A DNA stretch of 64,000 bases from Neoechinorhynchus agilis (lineage: Eukaryota > Animalia > Acanthocephala). The stretch spans positions 7,170,784 to 7,234,783 of the forward strand of contig CM121341.1 of assembly GCA_051530055.1 (NCBI GenBank), in the 5' to 3' direction. Below, one piece after another: positions 10,548-64,000 of this stretch. The position numbers and the translations under genes were made by a program. The notes under the pieces were generated by a model. That model saw only the letters and a list, made by a program, of their open reading frames with translations. It was not told the origin of the DNA and ran no database searches. The first letter of the stretch is position 1; each line of letters starts with the position of its first letter.

Positions 10548-11670
10548 GGATGAAGACTTCTAAGTAACACACTTCGGAAATTGAGATATTTCCAAAAAAG
10601 GAAGCCTAATCAATCATTTTTGATTTTTCCATCCACGGCGACCCCAAATGATTTTTCTCTTGATGATTAAAAAATTCTAAAGAATAAGAATCTCCAAGAC
10701 ACTTTTAATAACTAACTAACTGATGATCATGAACTCGACAGGAGGTTCAAAGAACGTCTTTAATTTTAAAGAATTATTTAATAGGTTAAGAAGACTTTTA
10801 AATAACACACTTCAAAAATTGAGATATTTCCAAAAAAGGCAGTCTAATCAGTCATCTAAAAAGACTTTAATTGATTTTTCCATCCACGGCGACCCCAAAT
10901 GATTTTTCTCTTGATGATTAAAAAATTCTAAAGAATAAGAATCTCCAAGACACTTTTAATAACTAACCAAATGATGATCATGAACTCGACAGGAGGTTCA
11001 AAGAACGTCTTTAATTTTAAAGAATTATTTAAAAGGTTAAGAAGACTTTTAAATAACACACTTCAAAAATTGAGATATTTCCAAAAAAATGGAGTCTAAT
11101 CAGTCATCTAAAAAGACTTTAATTGATTTTTCCATCCACGGCGACCCAAATGATTTTTTAAATAACACATTAAAATTGAGATTTTCAAAAAAGAGTAATC
11201 ACTCTTGATGATTAAAAAATTCTAAAGAATAAGAATCTCCAAGGCACTTTTAATAACTAACCAACTATGATGATCATGAAGTTCTCGACGAGGTTCAAAG
11301 AACGTTTTATTTTTAAAGAATTATTTAAAAGGTTAAGAAGACTTTTAAATAACACACTTAAAAAATTTAGATGTTTACAAAAAAATGAAGCCTAATCAGT
11401 CATCTAAAAAGACTTTAATTGATTTTTCCATCCACGGCGACCTCCAAATGATTTTCTCTTGTGATTTTTCCATCCACGGCGACCTCCAAATGATTTTCTC
11501 TTGGTGATTAACAATTTAAATACCACCTAAGAATTATTGATTATTTTAGTTCTAAAGAACAAGAATCTCCAAGACACTTTTAATAACTAAGCAACTGATG
11601 ATGATGAACTCGACAGGAGGTTCAAAAAACGTTTTTAATAAAAAAGTTATTTACTGGGTGAAGACTTCTA
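10548..11670. repeat. Degenerate tandem array, ~4 units of ~250-330 bp
   Basis: AAGAATCTCCAAG recurs at ~10686, ~10937, ~11231 and ~11561, with recurring TTTTCCATCCACGGCGACC; a related fragment lies at ~8965-9050. Confidence 0.85.
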
Positions 11671-16820: not shown

Positions 16821-17849
16821 CTAAAGATAGGAGACAAAATACTTTAAAACTATGTAGCCGTCTATTCAACGATTTTCTGCAATCCAAATATACTCAATAT
16901 TCGAAGCTCTTGTTAGAAAACGTTAGCGATTCTCTCAAAATGAGTCGAGAAATTATACAAACAAAAGATTCTTCATCAAAAAAAGCTTTGAAATGCACAT
17001 CGAACAACTGTCAGTCATGAGAAATGCTTTTTACGATTCCCCTTTATTATTGAATTAATTTCGTGGTTTCAATGTGCAGAAAAATTGATTTTTTATCTAA
17101 ATTAATTTTAAACTAACAAAGACCAAAAAGCGTTATTCTCTTAACAATTTTGATCAGTGTAGTGTTTTTCCCTTCAGCTCACCATTGTGGAATCAAAATA
17201 GCACCTTTTGTGAATCTTCACTGGCTGGAGTGTTCGGCACGAAAAAACCTATAGCCAATAAAAATCGAATGCAAAATTTTAGTTGATCCAGAAAATTTTA
17301 TCGGACAACCGCAGAATAATTAGCGAACGTGCGAATAATTTTATGAGCCTCGATCAAAAGTTGCTTGCATTTCACAATATGTATTTTATTTGTTAAAAAT
17401 AATGAGAAATTTATATAAGAAAGCATTGACAATGAACGGTGGATATCCAAACGAGTAACTTTGCAATTATCAACAACAAAATGAATCACAGGTTTAATTT
17501 GCTGCCGATGTTGACCAATTTATTATAATCAATATAAATTTTATGCTGCCGACATAAAAAACGATGAACGTCGAGATTTTTTTTCATGACCGTAAAAACA
17601 CATTAATTTCAAGCATCGAAGTTTCTAAACATAATTAAAAATCATACCGAGAAAATCCACAGGGATGGTAAATTTGGACTTGTGGTGAAACAATAAAATG
17701 ATTTTTCACCACAAGTCACAATTAAAAATGATGGTCGTCTTCACCAAAGATCTCCATCTCCGAATCCCTCCCTCTCCAGTCATCCGATGGTTCAGGAAGT
17801 CGCAGATCCTCCATTTCATACTGGAAAAAACCCAGTATTTTGTGCACCA

Positions 17850-19490
17850 AACGTTCAAAATTCGTACATTTAATGTTTTCGGCGCCGCTTTATGCGTTTC
17901 CGATTGATTTGAGTGTTCTTGGGCCACTGCTTACTTTTACAACCTTGATAAAGGCACGAGACTGTGCCGAAATAACGAATTTAATAAATTTCTTCTATTT
18001 TTTCGCCAATAACAAGCAATAAGTTTTTCAACATTTACAGCCTTGGATCGCTTTTTAAAATTGTGCTTTAAAATTTCATCTTCGGTTTTGATTTTTCAAC
18101 TCAGCAGGATATTTGCGGACGGAAATAACACGGTAAACAATTCTGCTGTTCTTATGCTGTAAAGTCTTAATGTAAAGATTAGCCGATAAATGGTAGTTTG
18201 CTTCTTAGAAATGATCGGAAATCTTGTCAATAAGTGGAAAAAACGTTCAGAATTCGTACATTTAATGTTTTCGGCGCCGCTTTATGCGTTTCCGATTCAT
18301 TTGAGTGTTCTTAGGCCTTTGCTTACTTTTACAACCTTGATAAAGGCACGAGACTGTGCCGAAATAACGAATTTAATAAATTTCTTCTATTTTTCGCCAA
18401 TAACAAGCAATAAGTTTTTCAACATTTACAGCCTTGGATCGCTTTTTAAAATTGTGCTTTAAAATTTCATCTTCGGTTTTGATTTTTCAGCTCAGCAGGA
18501 TATTTGCGGACGGAAATAACACGGTAAACAATTCTGCTGTTCTTATGCTGTAAAGTCTTAATGTAAAGATTAGCCGATAAATGGTAGTTTGCTTCTTAGA
18601 AATGATCGGAAATCTTGTCAATAAGTGGAAAAAACGTTCAGAATTCGTACATTTAATGTTTTCGGCGCCGCTTTATGCGTTTCCGATTCATTTGAGTGTT
18701 CTTAGGCCTTTGCTTACTTTTACAACCTTGATAAAGGCACGAGACTGTGCCGAAATAACGAATTTAATAAATTTCTTCTATTTTTCGCCAATAACAAGCA
18801 ATAAGTTTTTCAACATTTACAGCCTTGGATCGCTTTTTAAAATTGTGCTTTAAAATTTCATCTTCGGTTTTGATTTTTCAGCTCAGCAGGATATTTGCGG
18901 ACGGAAATAACACGGTAAACAATTCTGCTGTTCTTATGCTGTAAAGTCTTAATGTAAAGATTAGCCGATAAATGGTAGTTTGCTTCTTAGAAATGATCGG
19001 AAATCTTGTCAATAAGTGGAAAAAACGTTCAGAATTCGTACATTTAATGTTTTCGGCGCCGCTTTATGCGTTTCCGATTCATTTGAGTGTTCTTAGGCCT
19101 TTGCTTACTTTTACAACCTTGATAAAGGCACGAGACTGTGCCGAAATAACGAATTTAATAAATTTCTTCTATTTTTTCGCCAATAACAAGCAATAAGTTT
19201 TTCAACATTTACAGCCTTGGATCGCTTTTTAAAATTGTGCTTTAAAATTTCATCTTCTGTTTTGATTTTTCAGCTCAGCAGGATATTTGCCGACGGAAAT
19301 AACACGATAAACAATTCTGCTGTTCTTATGCTGTAAAGTCTTAATGTAAAGATTAGCCGATAAATGGTAGTTTGCTTCTTAGAAATGATCGGAAATCTTG
19401 TCAATAAGTGGAAAAAACGTTCAGAATTCGTACATTTAATGTTTTCGGCGCCGCTTTATGCGTTTCCGATTCATTTGAGTGTTCTTAGGC
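17850..19490. repeat. ~391-bp tandem array (~4.2 units) derived from the 3' end of the adjacent EBP2 gene
   Basis: Unit starts at 18190, 18581, 18972 and 19364 (ORF track). Each unit holds the EBP2 stop and 3' flank plus a diverged copy of its last ~45 codons with an ~81-nt insertion. Confidence 0.92.
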
Positions 19491-21710: not shown

Positions 21711-22734
21711 ATGGAATTCCCCGAAGAAAACGACGAGGCTCCCATAGTTCCGAAACGAGGTCAAATACTGTGCAGACTTGGCGCCGGTTCGTATGGAACG
21801 GTTTACAAGTTACTCAACACCGATACTGGAGAAATAAGAGCGCTGAAAACCGAATTTGTCCGAGATATAAAGCGAATCCAACTGAAAACTGAACACGAAG
21901 TCTACGAGGCAGTTGGGAATCGTTTTGGATTTGTTAAATGTTATAATGCAATTTTTGGCACAAAAGTAAGTTCAATTGAGCTGGACTACATGGGTCCAAG
22001 CGTGCATGACATTGCTGCTCTTCGTCGCACATTTGGATTCAACGAAAAGACCGTCTTGATGCTCGCATATCAGATGATCAATGCACTGGAATCCTTAAAG
22101 CACAGAGTTCAAATCTTTTAGTCTAGAATAAAGATTTGAGATCTCAATACACGAATGCCACTTTTTACACCGTGATGTAAAGCTAAGCAACTTCGTTCTT
22201 GGTCGTGGTGATCGTTCTCACATAGTTCATTTGATAGATTTCGGTCTGTCCAAACGATATAGAGATCGCGAAACTTTGAAACATATCGAGAATGGCACTT
22301 CATCGGGGCTTGTTGGGACTCTTCGTTATATGTCTTTGAATGTGCATCGAAACAAAGAAACTGCCAGAAGAGATGATCTTGAGTCACTCGGATATGCGCT
22401 GGTTCATATGAGCAGAGGAAATCTTCCTTGGATGGGCATACGAGCTATCGACCGGAAGGATAGATATGAACGAGTCTTTGGAATGAAAAGGCGAACGAGT
22501 ATAGAAACTCTTTGCTCGGGTAGCTGTTCCCCATTCTTATTACCATTTATGCGATACGTCCGAGAACTCGAGTTTGATGAACGTCCCGATTACCAGTACT
22601 TAAAGGACCTCGTTCTGTCGCGAATGATTGAGATGCGCTTTCGATTCGATTTTAACTATGATTGGCTAAGCGAGTATGCGAATTCTAAGAAATTTTGGAA
22701 GTTACAATTCTGGCAAAGACGAAAGTGTGGTTGA
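21711..22734 (+). CDS. Casein kinase 1 family Ser/Thr kinase, interrupted at ~22098-22152
   Basis: LGAGSYGTVY, ALKTE, LDYMGPS, KTVLMLAYQMI, then after a frame-changing interruption FLHRDVKLSNF, IDFGLSKRY, GTLRYMS, RRDDLESLGY, LPW.GI, L.FDERPDYQYL, FD.NYDW. May be spliced or a pseudogene. Confidence 0.85.
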
Positions 22735-25290: not shown

Positions 25291-26152
25291 AATCTGAAAT
25301 TAAAGACTATAATCGTTTTTAATTTAAAAACACAAATCATTTATTTGAAATTTCAACGACTATTCTTATTAATCGACAAAAAATCCTTTAAAGATACTCT
25401 TTATTCAATTGTCTTTGCAGCACTTGCTGAACTGCATTCAGAATAAATACATTTTTTTGAATTAGCTAAGGATTCGAATCTTTATAGCCGTTTTATTCAC
25501 TTTATTGCGGAATTGATTCTTTTTTTTCTAATTTGACTATCAATGCATGCAATAGAAAAAACGTACACGGCATAAAAATATACTCTATATAGAACTGCAA
25601 TTGATTATTTATTAAATATTTCGATCCCCTATCTTGGATCTTCTTCAGAATTGTTTGCAAGTGTTTACGACGATAGATCGTGTCAGTCGGAAACACTTGC
25701 AAACAATTATGAAGAAGATGCAAGATAGGGTGAATTTAATAAATAATCAATTGAAGTTCTCCAAAACAACCAACAAACTATGAATCATATTTTCAATATA
25801 CTCCATATATCCGGACTTCTTTGAAAAAATAACAAAAAGTAGCCATATTTAGCCGTTACCTTATTGTTCCAAGCAACGTCAATAATAAAAAAAGGCCTCT
25901 CCTCACATTTGAAACTTATAAGCAATACTTGAGAAGGAAGCTTAGGCTTTGAAAATTCGCAATGAAGAGTTCAATAAAGCTCGAGTGGGAGAACAATTCA
26001 CCATTGAGAATACACGTCGACTAGAAGGAACAATTGGATCGAATAAAAAAGTGTCACACGAGTATATCGCTAACTAAACTTTAATGAGGAGACTAAATTC
26101 ATTAGTTCGGAATGGGTAACAACACGTTTTATTTTGTTTAAGAAGAGGATCC

Positions 26153-27900: not shown

Positions 27901-28539
27901 ATACGCATGATTAAATTTTGAAGATATGAAAAAAGATTCCGCTTCAAAAAGTGATTTTTTTAAAGAAGTTTCTCGATGTATAGTGAAACATTCGCATTAA
28001 CTGTGTATATTTATCGATTTTGTTTGCTCAGATTTAAAATCTTTTCCCATTCTAGTTGAGACGAATTAGAGACAAAACTTGTAAAATCACGATTTGCCCT
28101 TCATAAAATCTTAAAGAACGTGGACGACTGCGATGCAATCTCTATAATCAAAAATCTGATTTGCGGGAATTAAAGGGAGCTTGAAGTATGTGGAATGCTG
28201 CTTTGAAGCAATTGTTTCTAGGAGGAAAACGATTTTTTCGGTAAATTGCTTCCTGTTATGATATTACAAATAACGAGATAGTACCAAGAATAGTTTATAT
28301 TAAAAGAAGGCTGCATTCCTTTGGTATTTGTGCATCTATTCTTCAATCGTCGATACCAAGTCGACGTTCTAATTCTGATGATGTCGGGCCTATAAATCAT
28401 AAATAAACGGAAACTTTGTGGCGTTTAATTATTTCCATGTCCAAAAAATCGCATTAATCCTGAAATGTATCCGGTTTTAATCAAAACAGCGTTTTTGTTT
28501 ATGAATTTAAGACAATTTATTGAGCGGTTTCGTACATTT

Positions 28540-29655
28540 TAAACATCTCGACGTGAGTTCATAAAATAATCAAAATATCCTGATTAGAAAGTGACTTTTA
28601 AACCAGATGAAGAAATAAGAGGCTCAATTTTTCTAAAAGAAGAAACCGCACTTTTTTTGAAAACTTTTTATCGAGCCGTTTCGTGTTTTTTAAACATCTC
28701 GACGTGAGTTCATAAATCAATCAAAATATCCTGATTAGAAAGTGACTTTTAAACCAGATGAAGAAATAAGAGGCTCAATTTTTTTAAAGAAGAACCCGCA
28801 CTTTTTTGGGAACTTTTTATCGAGCTGTTTCGTATTTTTTAAACATCTCGACGTGAGTTCATAAATCAATCAAAATATCTCGATTAGAAAGTGACTTTTA
28901 AACCAGATGAAGAAATAAGAGGCTCAATTTTTTTAAAGAAGAAACCGCACTTTTTTGGAAACTTTTTATCGAGCCGTTTCGTACTTTTTAAACATCTCGA
29001 CGTTATTTCATAAATCAAAATATCTCGATTAGAAAGTGACTTTTAAACCAGATGAAGAAATAGGAGGCTCAATTTTCTAAAAGAAGAAACGCACTTTTTT
29101 GAAAACTTTTTATCGAGTTGTTTCGTACATTTTAAACATCTCGACGTGAGTTCATAAATCAATCAAAATATCCTGATTAGAAAGTGACTTTTAAACCAGA
29201 TGAAGAAATAAGAGGCTCAATTTTTTTAAAGAAGAAACCGCACTTTTTTGGAAACTTTTTATCGAGCCGTTTCGCACCCATTAAACATCTCGACGTGAGT
29301 TCATAAATCAATCAAAATATCTCGATTAGAAAGTGACTTTTAAACCAGATGAAGAAATAAGAGGCTCAATTTTTTTAAAGAAGAAACCGCACTTTTTTTG
29401 GGAACTTTTTATCGAGTTGTTTCGTACATTTTAAACATCTCGACGTGAGTTCATAAATCAATCAAAATATCTCGATTAGAAAGTAGCTATTAAACCAGAT
29501 GAAGAAATAAGAGGCTCAATTTTTTTAAAGAAGAAACCGCACTTTTTTTGAAAACTTTTTATCGAGCCGTTTCGCACCCATTAGACATCTCGACGTTATT
29601 TCATAAATCAAAATATCTCGATTGGAAAGTGACTTTTAAACCCGATGAAGAAAGA
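28540..29655. repeat. Tandem satellite, ~7.5 units of ~149 bp
   Basis: A(A/G)ACATCTCGACG recurs at ~28541, 28692, 28841, 28990, 29134, 29283, 29433 and 29583. Confidence 0.95.
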
Positions 29656-34460: not shown

Positions 34461-35373
34461 ATCAATAATCCCGGATATCCAAATTGAGTTGTTTTCGCCT
34501 AATCTAAGGCGTTTGTTTTAATAATTAACAATAACTGAAGAGGCGAGGTTTTCTCTCCTGAAATCTCTCAATTCAATGAAACGTCTTTTATCCGAGGGGG
34601 ATTGTGATCACTGCGTCTCATGAATTCTGTCATCCCGAAGGATTTTCTATCAATAATCCCGGATATCCAAATTGAGTTGTTTTCGCCCAATCTAAGGCGT
34701 TTGTTTTAATAATTAACAATAACTGACGAGGCGAGGTTTTCTCTTCTGAAATCTCTCAATTCAATAAAACGTCTTTTATCCGGGGGGAGGATTATGATCA
34801 CTGCGTCTCATGAACTCTATCATCCCGAAGGATTTTCTATCAATAATCCCGGATATCCAAATTGAGTTGTTTTCGCCCAATCTAAGGCGTTTGTTTTAAT
34901 AATTAACAATAACTGACGAGGCGAGGTTTTCTCTCCTGAAATCTCTCAATTCAATGAAACGTCTTATCCGGGAGTGAGATTGTGATCACTGCGTCTCATG
35001 AATTCTGTCATCCCGAAGGATTTTCTATCAATAATCCCGGATATCCAAATTGAGTTGTTTTCGCCCAATCTAAGGCGTTTGTTTTAATAATTAACAATAA
35101 CTGACGAGGCGAGGTTTTCTCTCCTGAAATCTCTCAATTCAATGAAACGTCTTATCCGGGAGTGAGATTGTGATCACTGCGTCTCATGAACTCTGTCATC
35201 CCGAAGGATTTTCTATCAATAATCCCGGATATCCAAATTGAGTTGTTTTCGCCTAATCTAAGGCGTTTGTTTTAATAATTAACAATAACTGAAGAGGCGA
35301 GGTTTTCTCTCCTGAAATCTCTCAATTCAATGAAACGTCTTTTATCCGAGGGGGATTGTGATCACTACGTCTC
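34461..35373. repeat. Tandem satellite, ~5 units of ~188 bp
   Basis: ATCAATAATCCCGGATATCC recurs at ~34461, 34649, 34839, 35027 and 35215. Confidence 0.95.
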
Positions 35374-35557
35374 AAAATGTGATTTTATTTATATTGACTT
35401 TCTGGATTATCACAAGCGCCCATGGAGTCCCGTGTCGGAAATAGAAGTGTTTGATGAAATTAAGCACGAATTTAATAAAGTTTAAAATTTAAAAATATGT
35501 TCATTTGCTAAACTATTTGTTTCTTTTTACGATCAAGAAACTATTTAATATTACAAT

Positions 35558-59100: not shown

Positions 59101-59470
59101 AAAGCTCATAGAGTTACCAACTCCGATGCTGAAAAATTGCGTGCATTGCGTTAAGAGTCGCAAAAACAGTGCCATATTCCACTGAGGAAAAAACGCAAGA
59201 GAGCTGAGCATCGTTGCTCGTATCTGATTTCCCTCTTTCCCACTAGCTGACAGTCAGATATATTTTGGTACACAAAAATAGCTTTTCTTGGGACAAAGGT
59301 TGTTTAGGCATTTGGCGTTTAACCATTATTCACTCCTTTGACTGAAGAATTATCTTCTCGAAACGAGTATAAGCGAATTCAGTAACGTGAGAGAGATAGT
59401 GGAAATGTTCAATTAGTCTTAAATTCCACTTACCCGTCCTCGCTATTTAGGATATAGAGGCAGCTAAGAA

Positions 59471-59914
59471 ATGAACAAGATCGTACCTTACAATCCAAAT
59501 CGACCGCGATCACCTCCATATTATCCACCGTCGAATCAATCAGTTCCAAACGATCTACGAATTGTGCGCAGTCGCGATGAACGAGGCTATGAAACGTTCG
59601 AAATAGATATTGGAGAATATGACCAGCGTGATATATCTGTTCAAGTTCACTCCGATAACCATTTAGTCGTCCACGCTGTACATTACTATAATTATTTGGA
59701 TAAGTTTAACTATGTCCGAAGGGAACTCCTTCGAACATTTCAACTTCCTCCAAATGCGGATCAAGAGTATATAAGCTCGAATTTGAGTCCAAATGGAATC
59801 TTAACTGTTCATGTGCCCATACGAAGACCAGTTCCTCCATACGAACCCCAACCAATGGACGCGATGGTAGTTCCGTTTCGACAAAATACACGAGCTCATG
59901 ATTTGAATTTTTGA
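59471..59914 (+). CDS. Small heat-shock protein (alpha-crystallin domain) 1
   Basis: FEIDIGEYDQRDISVQV...LVVHA...RELLRTFQLPPNAD...SSNLSPNGILTVHVP. Confidence 0.9.
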   Translation: MNKIVPYNPNRPRSPPYYPPSNQSVPNDLRIVRSRDERGYETFEIDIGEYDQRDISVQVHSDNHLVVHAVHYYNYLDKFNYVRRELLRTFQLPPNADQEYISSNLSPNGILTVHVPIRRPVPPYEPQPMDAMVVPFRQNTRAHDLNF

Positions 59915-60048
59915 AACTCTTTTTGCGAAACAAATCTTGAGTTGATAAAACAACTCAGCGTGAACATATCGACAGAAACAATTTTAGTAACCAAGTTTCA
60001 AGTTCAGTTGTCGATATAGTCGAGCCTCGTTCGACTCGCCGCTCATCG

Positions 60049-60450
60049 ATGTTGAACCGATTTATGCCCAATTTCAAACAGCAGGATAGATGTCGCGCAT
60101 CGTCTGGATCACGAATGTTGAACTCAAGACGCAACAGAATGTCCGTACATGATTTTTTGGATTCACCTCTAAAACCCGAATATTCTAAACGAAATCATTC
60201 CCTTATTGTCAGACTTGATCTTCGAGGATACAAAGCTCAGGATATAGCGATCAAGGTTGATGATTATCTGATGACGGTTAGCGCTCAATGTCGCTCTGAT
60301 GAAGACAATCGACGATATGAATCTCGAAAAAAAATTCAGACCTATGAGAAACAGTTTAGATTACCGGACGAAACAGATATTCGAAAGATAAAGTCCGAGC
60401 TGAATGCGAGAGGTGTTCTTGTAATTGAAATTCCATTGCAAAACTTCTAA
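60049..60450 (+). CDS. Small heat-shock protein (alpha-crystallin domain) 2
   Basis: VRLDLRGYKAQDIAIKV...TVSA...YEKQFRLPDETD...IKSELNARGVLVIEIP; the frame is open from 59941. Confidence 0.88.
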   Translation: MLNRFMPNFKQQDRCRASSGSRMLNSRRNRMSVHDFLDSPLKPEYSKRNHSLIVRLDLRGYKAQDIAIKVDDYLMTVSAQCRSDEDNRRYESRKKIQTYEKQFRLPDETDIRKIKSELNARGVLVIEIPLQNF

Positions 60451-60804
60451 AGACGGAGGACCGTGTTGTAAAGTCCCAATCTTATTGAGCGCGAGTGATT
60501 GATTTTTGTTTGCCTAGAGCGAGCAATGCATTGAAATGTTATTGGTTTCATTTTAAATATTGATTTTAACTTTTTCTGCATATGTGAATAAAGCAATTGC
60601 GATTAACATCGGCAATTCGAATCAGCCGGTAATAAATCTTTAAAAAGGTTGAACATCCAGCTTCGACAATCGATTTTTGTGGTTGTGCGTTCGAAAACTA
60701 TTAGCGATTTCCTTCACATAAAGTAAAAAATGATCTTTAATTCCACTAAAAGTTTGTTGGAAGGGGGAAGCTGTGAACGGTCTTTCCAGCTTATCCTGTG
60801 CGGA

Positions 60805-60891
60805 TGTTCCGGCCGGGAATCGAACCCGGATCTCGATGTAAATGCGCTTTTCCGCGTAAATACTCCGTGCTTTCCTCTTAGCTACCGGAAC
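60805..60891 (-). tRNA. tRNA-like gene with elongated anticodon arm/intron (Val-TAC or Lys-TTT register), copy 1
   Basis: GTTCCGG/CCGGAAC-A 7-bp acceptor, CCGGG-TTCGATT-CCCGG T arm, GCT/AGC D stem, A box TAGCTAAGAGG, B box GGTTCGATTCC. Confidence 0.6.
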
Positions 60892-61290
60892 CCGTTATTA
60901 ATGCCAAAAACAGCTATGTAAATACATTTAAAAACTAAACACATAATTTTTACAAGTTTAAATTGTTTTTCAAAAAACAGTCCTATCGATAACAAGCCTG
61001 CATAGAGCGAGCAACGCATTGAAATGTTGCTGGTTTCATTTCAAATATTGATTTTAACTTTTTCTGCATATGTGAATAAAGCAGAATTGTGATTAAGATT
61101 TCACAATTCGAATCAGCCGTAATAAATCTTTAAAAAGAACATCCAGCTTCGACAATCGATTTTTGATGTTGTGCGTTCGAAAACTATTAGCGATTTCCTT
61201 CACATAAAGTAAAAAATGATCTTTAATTCCACTAAAAGTTTGTTGGAAGGGGGAAGCTGTGAACGGTCTTTCCAGCTTATAATATGCGGA

Positions 61291-61377
61291 TGTTCCGGCC
61301 GGGAATCGAACCCGGATCTCGATGTAAATGCGCTTTTCCGCGTAAATACTCCGTGCTTTCCTCTTAGCTACCGGAAC
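61291..61377 (-). tRNA. tRNA-like gene, copy 2 (identical body)
   Basis: Same 87-nt sequence as copy 1. Confidence 0.6.
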
Positions 61378-61778
61378 CCGTTATTATTGCCAAAAACAGC
61401 TATGTAAATACATTTAAAAACTAAACACATAATTTTTACAAGTTTAAATTGTTTTTCAAAAAACAGTCCTATCGATAACAAGCCTGCATAGAGCGAGCAA
61501 CGCATTGAAATGTTATTGGTTTCATTTTAAATATTGATTTTAACTTTTTCTGCATATGTGAATAAAGCAATTGCGATTAACATCGGCAATTCGAATCAGC
61601 CGGTAATAAATCTTTAAAAAGGTTGAACATCCAGCTTCGACAATCGATTTTTGATGTTGTGCGTTCGAAAACTATTAGCGATTTCCTTCACATAAAGTAA
61701 AAAATGATCTTTAATTCCACTAAAAGTTTGTTGGAAGGGGGAAGCTGTGAACGGTCTTTCCAGCTTATAATATGCGGA

Positions 61779-61865
61779 TGTTCCGGCCGGGAATCGAACC
61801 CGGATCTCGATGTAAATGCGCTTTTCCGCGTAAATACTCCGTGCTTTCCTCTTAGCTACCGGAAC
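61779..61865 (-). tRNA. tRNA-like gene, copy 3 (identical body)
   Basis: Same 87-nt sequence as copy 1. Confidence 0.6.
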
Positions 61866-62271
61866 CCGTTATTATTGCCAAAAACAGCTAGTAAAATACA
61901 TTTTAAAAAATAAACACATAATTTTTACAAGTTTAAATTGTTTTTCAAAAAACAGTCCTATCGATAACAAGCCTTGCATAGAGCGAGCAACGCATTGAAA
62001 TGCGTTAATTGGTTTCATTTTAGATATTGATTTTAACTTTTTCTGCATATGTGAATAAAGCAATTGAGATTAACATCGGCAATTCGAATCAGCCGGTAAT
62101 AAATCTTTAAAAAGGTTGAACATCCAGCTTCGACAATCGATTTCTGATGTTGTGCGTTCGAAAACTATTAGCGATTTCCTTCACATAAAGTAAAAAATGA
62201 TCTTTAATTCCACTAAAAGTTTGTTGGAAGGGGGAAGCTGTGAACGGTCTTTCCAGCTTATCCTGTGCAGA

Positions 62272-62359
62272 TGTTCCCGCCGGGAATCGAACCCGGATCT
62301 CGATGTAAATGCGCTTTTCCGCGTAAATAACTCCGTGCTTTCCTCTTAGCTACCGGAAC
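62272..62359 (-). pseudogene. tRNA-like gene, copy 4 (damaged)
   Basis: Substitution in the 3' acceptor strand (plus-strand gttcccg) and a 1-nt insertion in the anticodon stem. Confidence 0.55.
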
Positions 62360-62756
62360 CCGTTATTATTGCCAAAAACAGCTATGTAAATACATTTAAA
62401 AACTAAACACATAATTTTTACAAGTTTAAATTGTTTTTCAAAAAACAGTCCTATCGATAACAAGCCTGCATAGAGCGAGCAACGCATTGAAATGTTATTG
62501 GTTTCATTTTAAATATTGATTTTAACTTTTTCTGCATATGTGAATAAAGCAATTCGTTAACATCGGCAATTCGAATCAGCCGGTAATAAATCTTTAAAGG
62601 TTGAACATCCAGCTTCGACAATCGATTTTTGATGTTGTGCGTTCGAAAACTATTAGCGATTTCCTTCACATAAAGTAAAAAATGATCTTTAATTCCACTA
62701 AAAGTTTGTTGGAAGGGGGAAGCTGTGAACGGTCTTTCCTGCTTATCCTGTGCAGA

Positions 62757-62843
62757 TGTTCCGGCCGGGAATCGAACCCGGATCTCGATGTAAATGCGCT
62801 TTTCCGCGTAAATACTCCGTGCTTTCCTCTTAGCTACCGGAAC
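62757..62843 (-). tRNA. tRNA-like gene, copy 5 (identical body)
   Basis: Same 87-nt sequence as copy 1. Confidence 0.6.
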
Positions 62844-63243
62844 CCGTTATTATTGCCAAAAACAGCTATGTAAATACATTTAAAAACTAAACACATAATT
62901 TTTACAAGTTTAAATTGTTTTCAAAAAACAGTCCTATCGATAACAAGCCTGCATAGAGCGAGCAACGCATTGAAATGTTATTGGTTTCATTTTAAATATT
63001 GATTTTAACTTTTTCTGCATATGTGAATAAAGCAATTGCGATTAACATCGGCAATTCGAATCAGCCGGTAATAAATCTTTAAAAAGGTTGAACATCCAGC
63101 TTCGACAATCGATTTTTGATGTTGTGCGTTCGAAAACTATTAGCGATTTCCTTCCCATAAAGTAAAAAATGATCTTTAATTCCACTAAAAGTTTGTTGGA
63201 AGGGGGAAGCTGTGAACGGTCTTTCCTGCTTATCCTGTGCGGA

Positions 63244-63330
63244 TGTTCCGGCCGGGAATCGAACCCGGATCTCGATGTAAATGCGCTTTTCCGCGTAAAT
63301 ACTCCGTGCTTTCCTCTTAGCTACCGGAAC
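63244..63330 (-). tRNA. tRNA-like gene, copy 6 (identical body)
   Basis: Same 87-nt sequence as copy 1. Confidence 0.6.
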
Positions 63331-63730
63331 CCGTTATTATTGCCAAAAACAGCTATGTAAATACATTTAAAAACTAAACACATAATTTTTACTAGTTTAA
63401 ATTGTTTTTCAAAAAACAGTCCTATCGATAACAAGCCTGCATAGAGCGAGCAACACATTGAAATGTTATTGGTTTCATTTTAAATATTGATTTTAACTTT
63501 TTCTGCATATGTGAATAAAGCAATTGCGATTAACATCGGCAATTCGAATCAGCTCGCAATAAATCTTTAAAAAGGTTGAACATCCAGCTTCACAATCGAT
63601 TTCTGATGTTGTGCGTTCGAAAACTATTAGCGATTTCCTTCACATAAAGTAAAAAATGATCTTTAATTCCACTAAAAGTTTGTTGGAAGGGGGAAGCTGT
63701 GAACGGTCTTTCCTGCTTATCCTGTGCAGA

Positions 63731-63810
63731 TGTTCCGGCCGAACCCGGATCTCGATGTAAATGCGCTTTTCCGCGTAAATACTCCGTGCTTTCCTCTTAG
63801 CTACCGGAAC
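63731..63810 (-). pseudogene. tRNA-like gene, copy 7 (7-nt deletion in the T arm/B box)
   Basis: Plus-strand ccggccgaacc instead of ccggccgggaatcgaacc. Confidence 0.55.
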
Positions 63811-63847
63811 CCGTTATTATTGCCAAAAACAGCTAACCTTCCATCGT

Positions 63848-64000
63848 AATCGCAATTGCTTTATTCACATATGCAGAAAAAGTTAAAATCAATATTTAAA
63901 ATGAAACCAATAACATTTCAATGCGTTGCTCGCTCTATGCAGGCTTGTTATCGATAGGACTGTTTTTTGAAAAACAATTTAAACTAGTAAAAATTATGTG
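63848..64000 (-). repeat. Inverted copy of the 487-bp unit (the array switches orientation)
   Basis: Reverse complement of ~63378-63531, including the ACTAGT variant seen only at ~63391. Confidence 0.9.

Follow-up and report, generated by a model that had tools for sequence, protein, structure and literature searches.

A local tandem array of tRNA-like bodies with a replaced anticodon arm in the acanthocephalan Neoechinorhynchus agilis

The array and its neighbourhood

As listed in Table 1, a tandem array lies next to a small heat-shock gene in the window, that is, the whole 64-kb stretch of Neoechinorhynchus agilis DNA analysed here. TRF reported it as one array with a period of 488 bp, 6.8 copies, and 96% matches, and the unit alignment gave a pairwise identity of 91.5-98.7% among the units. 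The head-to-tail junction, from 60995 back to 60511, is closed by one DNA contig, so that the head-to-tail tandem arrangement typical of a satellite is seen in TRF, in the alignment, and in the contig alike. An exact search of the 64 kb located seven minus-strand tRNA-like bodies, all in the array, and no further copy elsewhere in the window. Thus, the original prediction of a tandem array of a tRNA-shaped gene at 60515-63835 proved right. At 63836-63846 the orientation of the array switches, and the array continues past the window end; an eighth body, in the plus orientation, is probably located a short way past that end.

Table 1. Features of the array and its surroundings (positions in the window)
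Feature	Position	Strand	Basis
Two-domain small heat-shock mRNA	59451..60736	+	HSP20 domains; RNA-type contigs, three runs
Tandem array of 488-bp units, 6.8 copies	60511..63835	-	TRF and unit alignment
Trailer to candidate Pol III stops	60725..60804	-	T4 at 60751-60748, T6 at 60730-60725
tRNA-like body of unit 7, intact consensus form, 87 nt	60805..60891	-	Rfam tRNA 46.5 bits; cloverleaf fold
B-box motif, unit 7	60816..60826	-	perfect GGTTCGANNCC
Anticodon-arm replacement, 34 nt, long imperfect hairpin	60834..60867	-	sequence, ARAGORN, fold; 30-nt Rfam insert
A-box-like motif, unit 7	60874..60884	-	1 mismatch to TRGCNNAGTGG
tRNA-like body of unit 6, identical to consensus	61291..61377	-	Rfam, alignment
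tRNA-like body of unit 5, identical to consensus	61779..61865	-	Rfam, alignment
tRNA-like body of unit 4, damaged	62272..62359	-	ARAGORN, Rfam, alignment
tRNA-like body of unit 3, identical to consensus	62757..62843	-	Rfam, alignment
tRNA-like body of unit 2, identical to consensus	63244..63330	-	Rfam, alignment
tRNA-like body of unit 1, damaged	63731..63810	-	alignment
Inverted partial unit	63847..64000	+	inverted repeats, 97-99% complementarity

How far does the repeat extend beyond this locus? When the unit was compared by BLAST with the remainder of the window (about 60 kb), only chance matches came up, and BLAST of the body against the unit's own spacer revealed no older tRNA remnant. The 5′ half and the acceptor plus T arm had 0 matches in two scans of metagenomes. 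Among the DNA contigs, those of the repeat have depths of 776-1030 versus 133 for the unique flank contig; this ratio suggests roughly 6-8 copies genome-wide, a figure that rests on contig mean depths and is rough by the tool's own warning.

The small heat-shock mRNA overlaps unit 7 by about 210-225 nt of its 3′ UTR, in the antisense direction relative to the trailer, and its contigs terminate at 60717-60736, which coincides with or adjoins the T6 run of the tRNA-like strand. A separate observation concerns the same gene: a 59-nt TA-flanked hairpin insert (59886-59944) is kept in the DNA and is missing from the RNA contigs of three worms, which may reflect either removal from the RNA or an insertion polymorphism. 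This is transcript-level evidence for unusual hairpin inserts, and it is possibly worth more than the array.

The tRNA-like bodies and their anticodon arm

Five of the seven bodies, each 87 nt in length, are identical in the unit alignment, as had been predicted, while the other two are damaged. Under the Rfam tRNA model (RF00005), five bodies reach 46.5 bits and a sixth 40.4, against a gathering threshold of 29, with an E value of 9e-07 over the whole window; thus, the resemblance to tRNA is well beyond chance. A 7-bp acceptor stem, a D arm, a 5-bp T stem, and the conserved bases of the D and T loops emerge from Rfam and folding together, and at minimum energy the body folds into a cloverleaf whose anticodon hairpin is long and imperfect (z = -2.95). 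The perfect pairing claimed earlier for the acceptor and T stems holds in the consensus bodies and fails in the damaged ones: unit 4 has a C>G change which disrupts one acceptor pair, as well as an added T in the anticodon arm, and unit 1 has a 7-nt deletion which takes part of the T arm and the B box and leaves the body with no Rfam call. Besides tRNA and mascRNA, the latter matched at 23-25 bits and thus below its threshold of 42.5, no hammerhead, other ribozyme, or other Rfam family was found in 60000-64000 at E<=1.

The resemblance is confined to the acceptor, D, and T arms. The Rfam alignment covers model positions 1-71 minus the anticodon loop, with a D loop one base shorter than that of the model, and a 30-nt insert is left unaligned where the anticodon loop belongs. 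In the replaced arm, ATTTAC occurs twice, 18 nt apart, flanking a small GC hairpin. Since the anticodon arm is replaced, no isotype can be assigned. By default, ARAGORN calls unit 4 only, as Asn(att), missing the five consensus bodies and the deleted body; with introns permitted, it takes the consensus bodies only as Met(CAT) with an intron at 33/34. The isotype shifts with the copy and the settings among Asn, Met, Thr, and Val. Two further ARAGORN models were rejected as spurious, since their introns (475 and 490 nt) span neighbouring units.

Is it a working, non-canonical tRNA from which an insert of 13-17 nt is spliced? It would be Lys(UUU) in a register with A33, Val(UAC) in one that has a 7-bp stem, or Met(CAU) in one where the intron falls at 33/34. 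The total Rfam score well above threshold and the Met(CAT) model of ARAGORN are in its favour. However, no register of the arm has a 7-nt loop with U33 and a purine at 37. The Lys register gives A33 and the Val register requires a 7-bp stem, in agreement with the earlier reading that neither yields a proper anticodon loop or intron; the Met register of ARAGORN has T37 and an intron at 33/34, a non-metazoan tRNA position. All registers therefore violate a near-universal rule (A33, a pyrimidine at 37, a 7-bp stem, or an intron off 37/38). Removing the 18-nt insert at the ATTTAC repeat was also tried; a 16-nt arm with a 6-nt loop remains, which is still no tRNA.

The bodies are like animal intron-containing tRNA genes (Tyr-GTA, Ile-TAT, and Leu-CAA) in their length of about 87 nt, in the extra bases of the anticodon arm, and in the intact frame of acceptor, D, and T arms. 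They differ from these genes in that removal of a 37/38 intron does not leave a 5-bp stem and a 7-nt loop with U33 and purine 37. They also differ in the splice sites: neither the fold nor the ARAGORN models have a bulge-helix-bulge motif or an anticodon-intron pair in the arm. Rather, the region folds as a near-continuous imperfect helix with the 3′ splice site within paired bases, and both canonical splice positions sit in helix or in a symmetric internal loop rather than in bulges. In another acanthocephalan species, Pomphorhynchus laevis, introns occur in the Leu-CAA, Ile-TAT, and Tyr-GTA genes only (PMC7310846, Table S6). The body is of similar length to the intron-bearing Tyr and Ile genes of this relative, but its candidate isotypes fall outside the intron-bearing set, the P. 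laevis Lys-TTT, Val-TAC, and Met-CAT genes being intronless. The short D loop and a first terminator lying 54 nt downstream also speak against a working tRNA, which is very improbable in any of the three registers. The bodies are probably not working tRNAs.

Promoters, trailer, and conservation

The A and B boxes had been described as intact, and in unit 7 they are, the B box being perfect and the A box having a single mismatch. On the minus strand, the first T4 follows the body at the distance given above, close to the predicted 50 nt or so, and a T6 run comes next. The trailer hairpin AAGCTG...CAGCTT was only partly upheld, since it is intact in four of the seven units, while the other three read AAGCAG. 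The longest invariant run of the unit alignment, 71 columns, lies mostly within the trailer, and the most invariant window of the unit is the trailer rather than the body. Over its 88 columns, the body shows 3 variable events. Its variation per column, 0.034, is lower than the flank average of 0.109 (Fisher p = 0.028), and among windows of that size within the unit, 13.8% are just as invariable. The conservation of the body is no higher than the background of the unit.

These data bear on whether the array produces a functional RNA. One possibility is a Pol III-transcribed family of tRNA-like noncoding RNAs, in which the acceptor/T half would be processed and the hairpin or the 54-nt trailer would have a non-decoding role; alternatively, the bodies, bound by Pol III, would halt or fence off transcription of the convergent small heat-shock gene at the DNA level, acting as its terminator or as a barrier. 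The intact boxes, the extended-arm cloverleaf as the minimum-energy fold, the five identical bodies together with the invariant trailer block, the heat-shock contig ends at or adjoining the T6 run, and the faint mascRNA likeness are all consistent with this. On the other hand, the body does not stand out from the unit in conservation, three units have a broken trailer hairpin and no compensating change, two bodies are damaged, and neither the window BLAST nor the two metagenome scans gave a homologue beyond the locus. The RNA data come from poly-A libraries, which are blind to Pol III products, and they contain the neighbouring small heat-shock mRNA plus one poly-A contig of depth 3 with undefined strand, the whole of the transcript support. 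Such an RNA family or barrier seems unlikely. It is still less probable that a lineage-specific tRNA-like Pol III RNA exists whose acceptor/T half recruits tRNA enzymes and whose hairpin or trailer is newly functional, or that the array is a stop or insulator for the heat-shock gene.

Is the array a cluster of copies of a mobile SINE with a tRNA head, or a single locus of a genome-wide satellite? As in SINEs, the unit does have a tRNA-like head of the Pol III type, complete with A and B boxes. However, the other 60 kb of the window hold no copies, the contig depth points to a total of about 6-8, and the unit has no hammerhead or other Rfam family at E<=1. Neither an A-rich, simple-repeat, or LINE-related tail nor a target-site duplication was seen in the sequence and alignment of the unit. 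The SINE reading is unsupported because no dispersed copy was found in the window, where all copies belong to one array, and because depth suggests so few; the same number by depth falls short of the high copy number at several loci that marks a satellite. There is only a slim chance that either applies. Of the earlier idea of a nascent tRNA-derived SINE or satellite, the satellite part comes closest, in the sense of a local, low-copy, tRNA-derived repeat, and the SINE part falls away for lack of dispersed copies. The two companion ideas, an amplified non-canonical tRNA and a tRNA-mimic ncRNA, gain no support from these data.

Origin and fate of the array

In the reading I prefer, with a probability of about two-thirds, a 488-bp segment carrying one tRNA-derived gene that had already decayed was amplified in tandem, recently and at this locus only, and the resulting array is most likely neutral. 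The starting point would be a segment with a single such gene, whose anticodon stem-loop was swapped for the 34-nt imperfect hairpin prior to amplification. The hairpin has the appearance of an 18-nt insertion, with ATTTAC as a direct repeat on either side. Since the hairpin replaces the anticodon stem-loop, the gene would already have been disabled as a decoder. Unequal crossing-over or replication slippage may then have multiplied the segment and kept the units alike, which would account for the near-identity of body, trailer, and spacer alike. The outcome would be about seven head-to-tail units and the one inverted partial unit. Where the promoters are intact, Pol III may still initiate, and trimming of the acceptor/T half, likewise intact, could fall to RNase P, RNase Z, and the CCA-adding enzyme. 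For want of a usable anticodon, the resulting RNA would be neither charged nor used in translation, for which reason the array is most likely neutral. Five identical bodies, perfect acceptor and T stems, and intact boxes count against this origin, being unusually clean for a pseudogene; the cleanness is explicable if the array is young. The lower variation of the body relative to its flanks also counts against it.

Arrays of this kind are already reported in acanthocephalans. In P. laevis, tRNA genes and pseudogenes are reported to stand commonly in tandem arrays (PMC7310846), and many members of the tandem tRNA genes are pseudo or truncated (PMC7310846, Table S6). There are 58 Cys rows on one contig, while the paper counts 57 Cys genes; an Ala-CGC array has a spacing of about 337 bp and Glu-TTC arrays one of about 1076 bp (PMC7310846, Table S6). 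The N. agilis array resembles these in that its units, each a few hundred bp long and holding a single tRNA-type body, run head to tail, and in the mixing of decayed members among intact ones, the P. laevis copies being intact, low-scoring, truncated, or changed in the anticodon. In contrast, the P. laevis bodies have definite isotypes (Cys, Ala, Glu, and Asp) and normal anticodon loops, while the arm is replaced in N. agilis, and P. laevis belongs to a different acanthocephalan class.

Outside the phylum, the array is like Xenopus laevis satellite 1 and the Hydromantes Hy/Pol III family in being a tandem unit with a tRNA-related region, and the N. agilis unit has A and B boxes. Those two are high-copy, multi-locus satellites. 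Both are tRNA-related Pol III tandem repeats (PMC9659126), whereas the N. agilis array is a single locus of about 7-8 copies whose transcription is putative.

If the local amplification described above is true, the array is another case of the easy amplification of tRNA genes and their remnants in acanthocephalan genomes. Its relevance is mostly to annotation, as tRNA finders miss the bodies or assign arbitrary isotypes to them. A stable processed RNA, if found, would raise the importance of the array, because tRNA mimics are built in this way, from a clean acceptor/T half and an arm foreign to tRNA.

The tandem array and its tRNA-shaped bodies

As listed in the table, Tandem Repeats Finder detected a single array of a 488-bp unit (6.8 copies, 96% matches) near the end of the window. 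An exact search of the 64-kb window with the first 18 bases of the tRNA-shaped body gave seven matches, every one of them on the minus strand and within the array. The unit alignment revealed that five of the seven bodies are identical, each 87 nt in length. In the body of unit 4, the anticodon arm has gained a T and one acceptor pair is disrupted by a C>G change; in unit 1, a deletion has removed 7 nt from the T arm and B box. The Rfam tRNA model (gathering score 29) gives 46.5 bits for the five consensus bodies and 40.4 for that of unit 4. The B box matches its motif perfectly, the A box with a single mismatch, and the first sense-strand T4 and a T6 lie 54 nt and 75 nt beyond the body, respectively. 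Thus, the original prediction described these repeated tRNA-shaped units accurately.

At its end, the array meets an inverted partial unit head to head; this unit continues past the window edge, so that the locus is a partial palindrome. Four further arrays in the window have no Rfam tRNA match at the gathering score and no sequence similarity to the 488-bp unit.

Features of the array and of its surroundings in the window
Feature	Position	Strand	Period or length
488-bp unit array	60511-63835		period 488
Body of unit 1 (deleted)	63731-63810	minus	
Body of unit 4 (mutated)	62272-62359	minus	
Body of unit 7	60805-60891	minus	
Trailer of unit 7 (3′ of the body)	60725-60804	minus	
End of array	63836-63846		
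Inverted partial unit	63847-64000		
Small heat-shock gene	59471-60450	plus	
Heat-shock mRNA contigs	59451-59885 joined to 59945-60717/60736	plus	
Insert in heat-shock gene	59886-59944 (+/-3 nt)	plus	59 nt
Insert in CK1 gene	22098-22152		55 nt
Tandem array	10620-11511		period 251/296
Tandem array	17849-19490		period 391
Tandem array	28516-29653		period 149/442
Tandem array	34461-35374		period 188/378

The anticodon arm and tRNA identity

The Rfam alignment spans the acceptor, D and T arms, with the middle 30 nt as an unaligned insert and a D loop one base short of the model. At minimum energy, the body folds into a cloverleaf (z = -2.95), the fourth arm being a long imperfect helix with a 6-nt closing loop. 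Is this a tRNA gene with an intron? The register counted from the D stem places A33 in the loop and gives the anticodon TTT with a 17-nt insert, and the Val(TAC) register requires a 7-bp stem. By default, ARAGORN called only the mutated unit 4 and missed the deleted body and all five of consensus form; with introns allowed, it proposed Met(CAT) with T at 37 and an intron between positions 33 and 34. Animal nuclear tRNA introns are not known to occupy this position. The canonical splice positions fall in paired bases or in a symmetric internal loop of the fold, and not in bulges. In the tRNAscan-SE table of another acanthocephalan, Pomphorhynchus laevis, introns occur in Leu-CAA, Ile-TAT, and Tyr-GTA only, and the Lys-TTT, Val-TAC, and Met-CAT genes have none (PMC7310846 Table S6). 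On these grounds, the locus does not match the case by which the original prediction might have failed, a regular intron-bearing tRNA frequent in the lineage. Nor is the body a normal tRNA gene.

Most tRNA synthetases read anticodon identity elements, and in the body these would be displaced from their expected place. Since G3:U70 and a long variable arm are also missing from the body, charging of its product would be unlikely. A working tRNA of odd form is highly improbable.

Transcripts and a hairpin insert beside the array

The RNA-type runs found come from one study only and contain 8-15% of the array's sampled words. The N. agilis paper describes poly-A mRNA-Seq of single worms (PMC12690905), a method that would not capture Pol III products. 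The RNA-type contigs at the array represent the neighbouring heat-shock mRNA, both ORFs of which are HSP20 domains. Its 3′ UTR enters the first unit by about 210-225 nt, antisense to the tRNA-like trailer, and ends before the body. A depth-3 contig spanning 60658-60853 has inner-unit-type variants.

It was also observed that at 59451, behind a canonical AG acceptor, the heat-shock mRNA contigs have 5′ leaders without a counterpart near the gene. The 28-nt leader of one run has no window match at up to 3 mismatches, and the distinct 17-nt leader of a second run has its sole window matches (3 mismatches) about 34 kb off, near 25670-25690. Both terminate in AACA; they may represent alternative 5′ exons located far away or leaders added by trans-splicing. 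A third run has the 28-nt leader in reverse complement, with 1 base different, joined at 60717, perhaps through chimeric assembly.

A separate observation concerns the 59-nt insert that divides the two-domain HSP20 gene into two ORFs. It is flanked by TA and folds into a hairpin. It is precisely absent from the RNA-type contigs of three runs and retained in a DNA-type contig, and its removal fuses the two ORFs in frame. GT-AG, GC-AG, or AT-AC ends were found in no register on either strand. Either the piece is a hairpin intron of non-canonical type that is removed from the RNA, or worms differ in whether they carry the insertion. Its stem is similar to that of the CK1 insert, likewise a hairpin, with the motif CAAATCTT / AAGATTTG in common; the two may represent a single family of short inverted-repeat inserts located in coding exons. 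The absence of the 59 nt from RNA contigs provides transcript-level support for hairpin inserts in this genome.

Origin of the array

A SINE or satellite had been among the original suggestions. In BLAST, the unit gave nothing beyond chance matches in the remaining 60 kb of the window, and an A-rich tail, a target-site duplication, and a ribozyme motif were all missing from the unit. One DNA-type Logan contig joins the unit head-to-tail. In the Logan contigs of a DNA-type run, possibly the assembly's own sample, the depth at 59400-60995 is 133 for the unique flank and 776 and 1030 for repeat contigs. Contig depth is a rough measure of copy number, and the ratio suggests a genome total of roughly 6-8 unit copies, which equals the content of this locus. 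By the search of the window and the contig depth, the array is a local tandem amplification, neither a dispersed element nor a genome-wide satellite, and a mobile or satellite family is scarcely credible.

Selection on the body was judged from the variation among units. In the body, 3 variable events fall in 88 alignment columns, versus 45 in 412 for the remaining unit (Fisher p = 0.028). The variation is patchy, with 3 or fewer events in 13.8% of all 88-column unit windows, and both the window of least variation and the longest stretch of invariant columns (71) fall largely within the trailer rather than the body. In three units, the AAGCTG/CAGCTT hairpin of the trailer is disrupted, with no compensating change. 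Unit-to-unit identity is 91.5-98.7%, and some adjacent units have variants in common. This pattern fits recent duplication and homogenisation; therefore, the five identical bodies are a sign of youth, not evidence of constraint. A functional tRNA-like RNA, or a role at the DNA level, seems unlikely.

The favored reading, to which I give about two chances in three, is that a tRNA-derived gene first suffered damage to its anticodon arm and was then multiplied into a young local array, a decoding role being very unlikely. The damage apparently came from an 18-nt insertion flanked by ATTTAC. Pol III transcription of the bodies may persist, and the intact acceptor/T half could undergo tRNA-like trimming. 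In P. laevis, tandem placement of tRNA genes is frequent: one contig has 58 tRNA rows (57 Cys genes by the paper's count, many pseudo or truncated), and Ala-CGC and Glu-TTC arrays have spacings of about 337 bp and about 1076 bp, respectively (PMC7310846). Lists of tandem repeat families related to tRNA likewise include examples from Xenopus and Hydromantes (PMC9659126). The tRNA-derived array of N. agilis adds to an already known kind.
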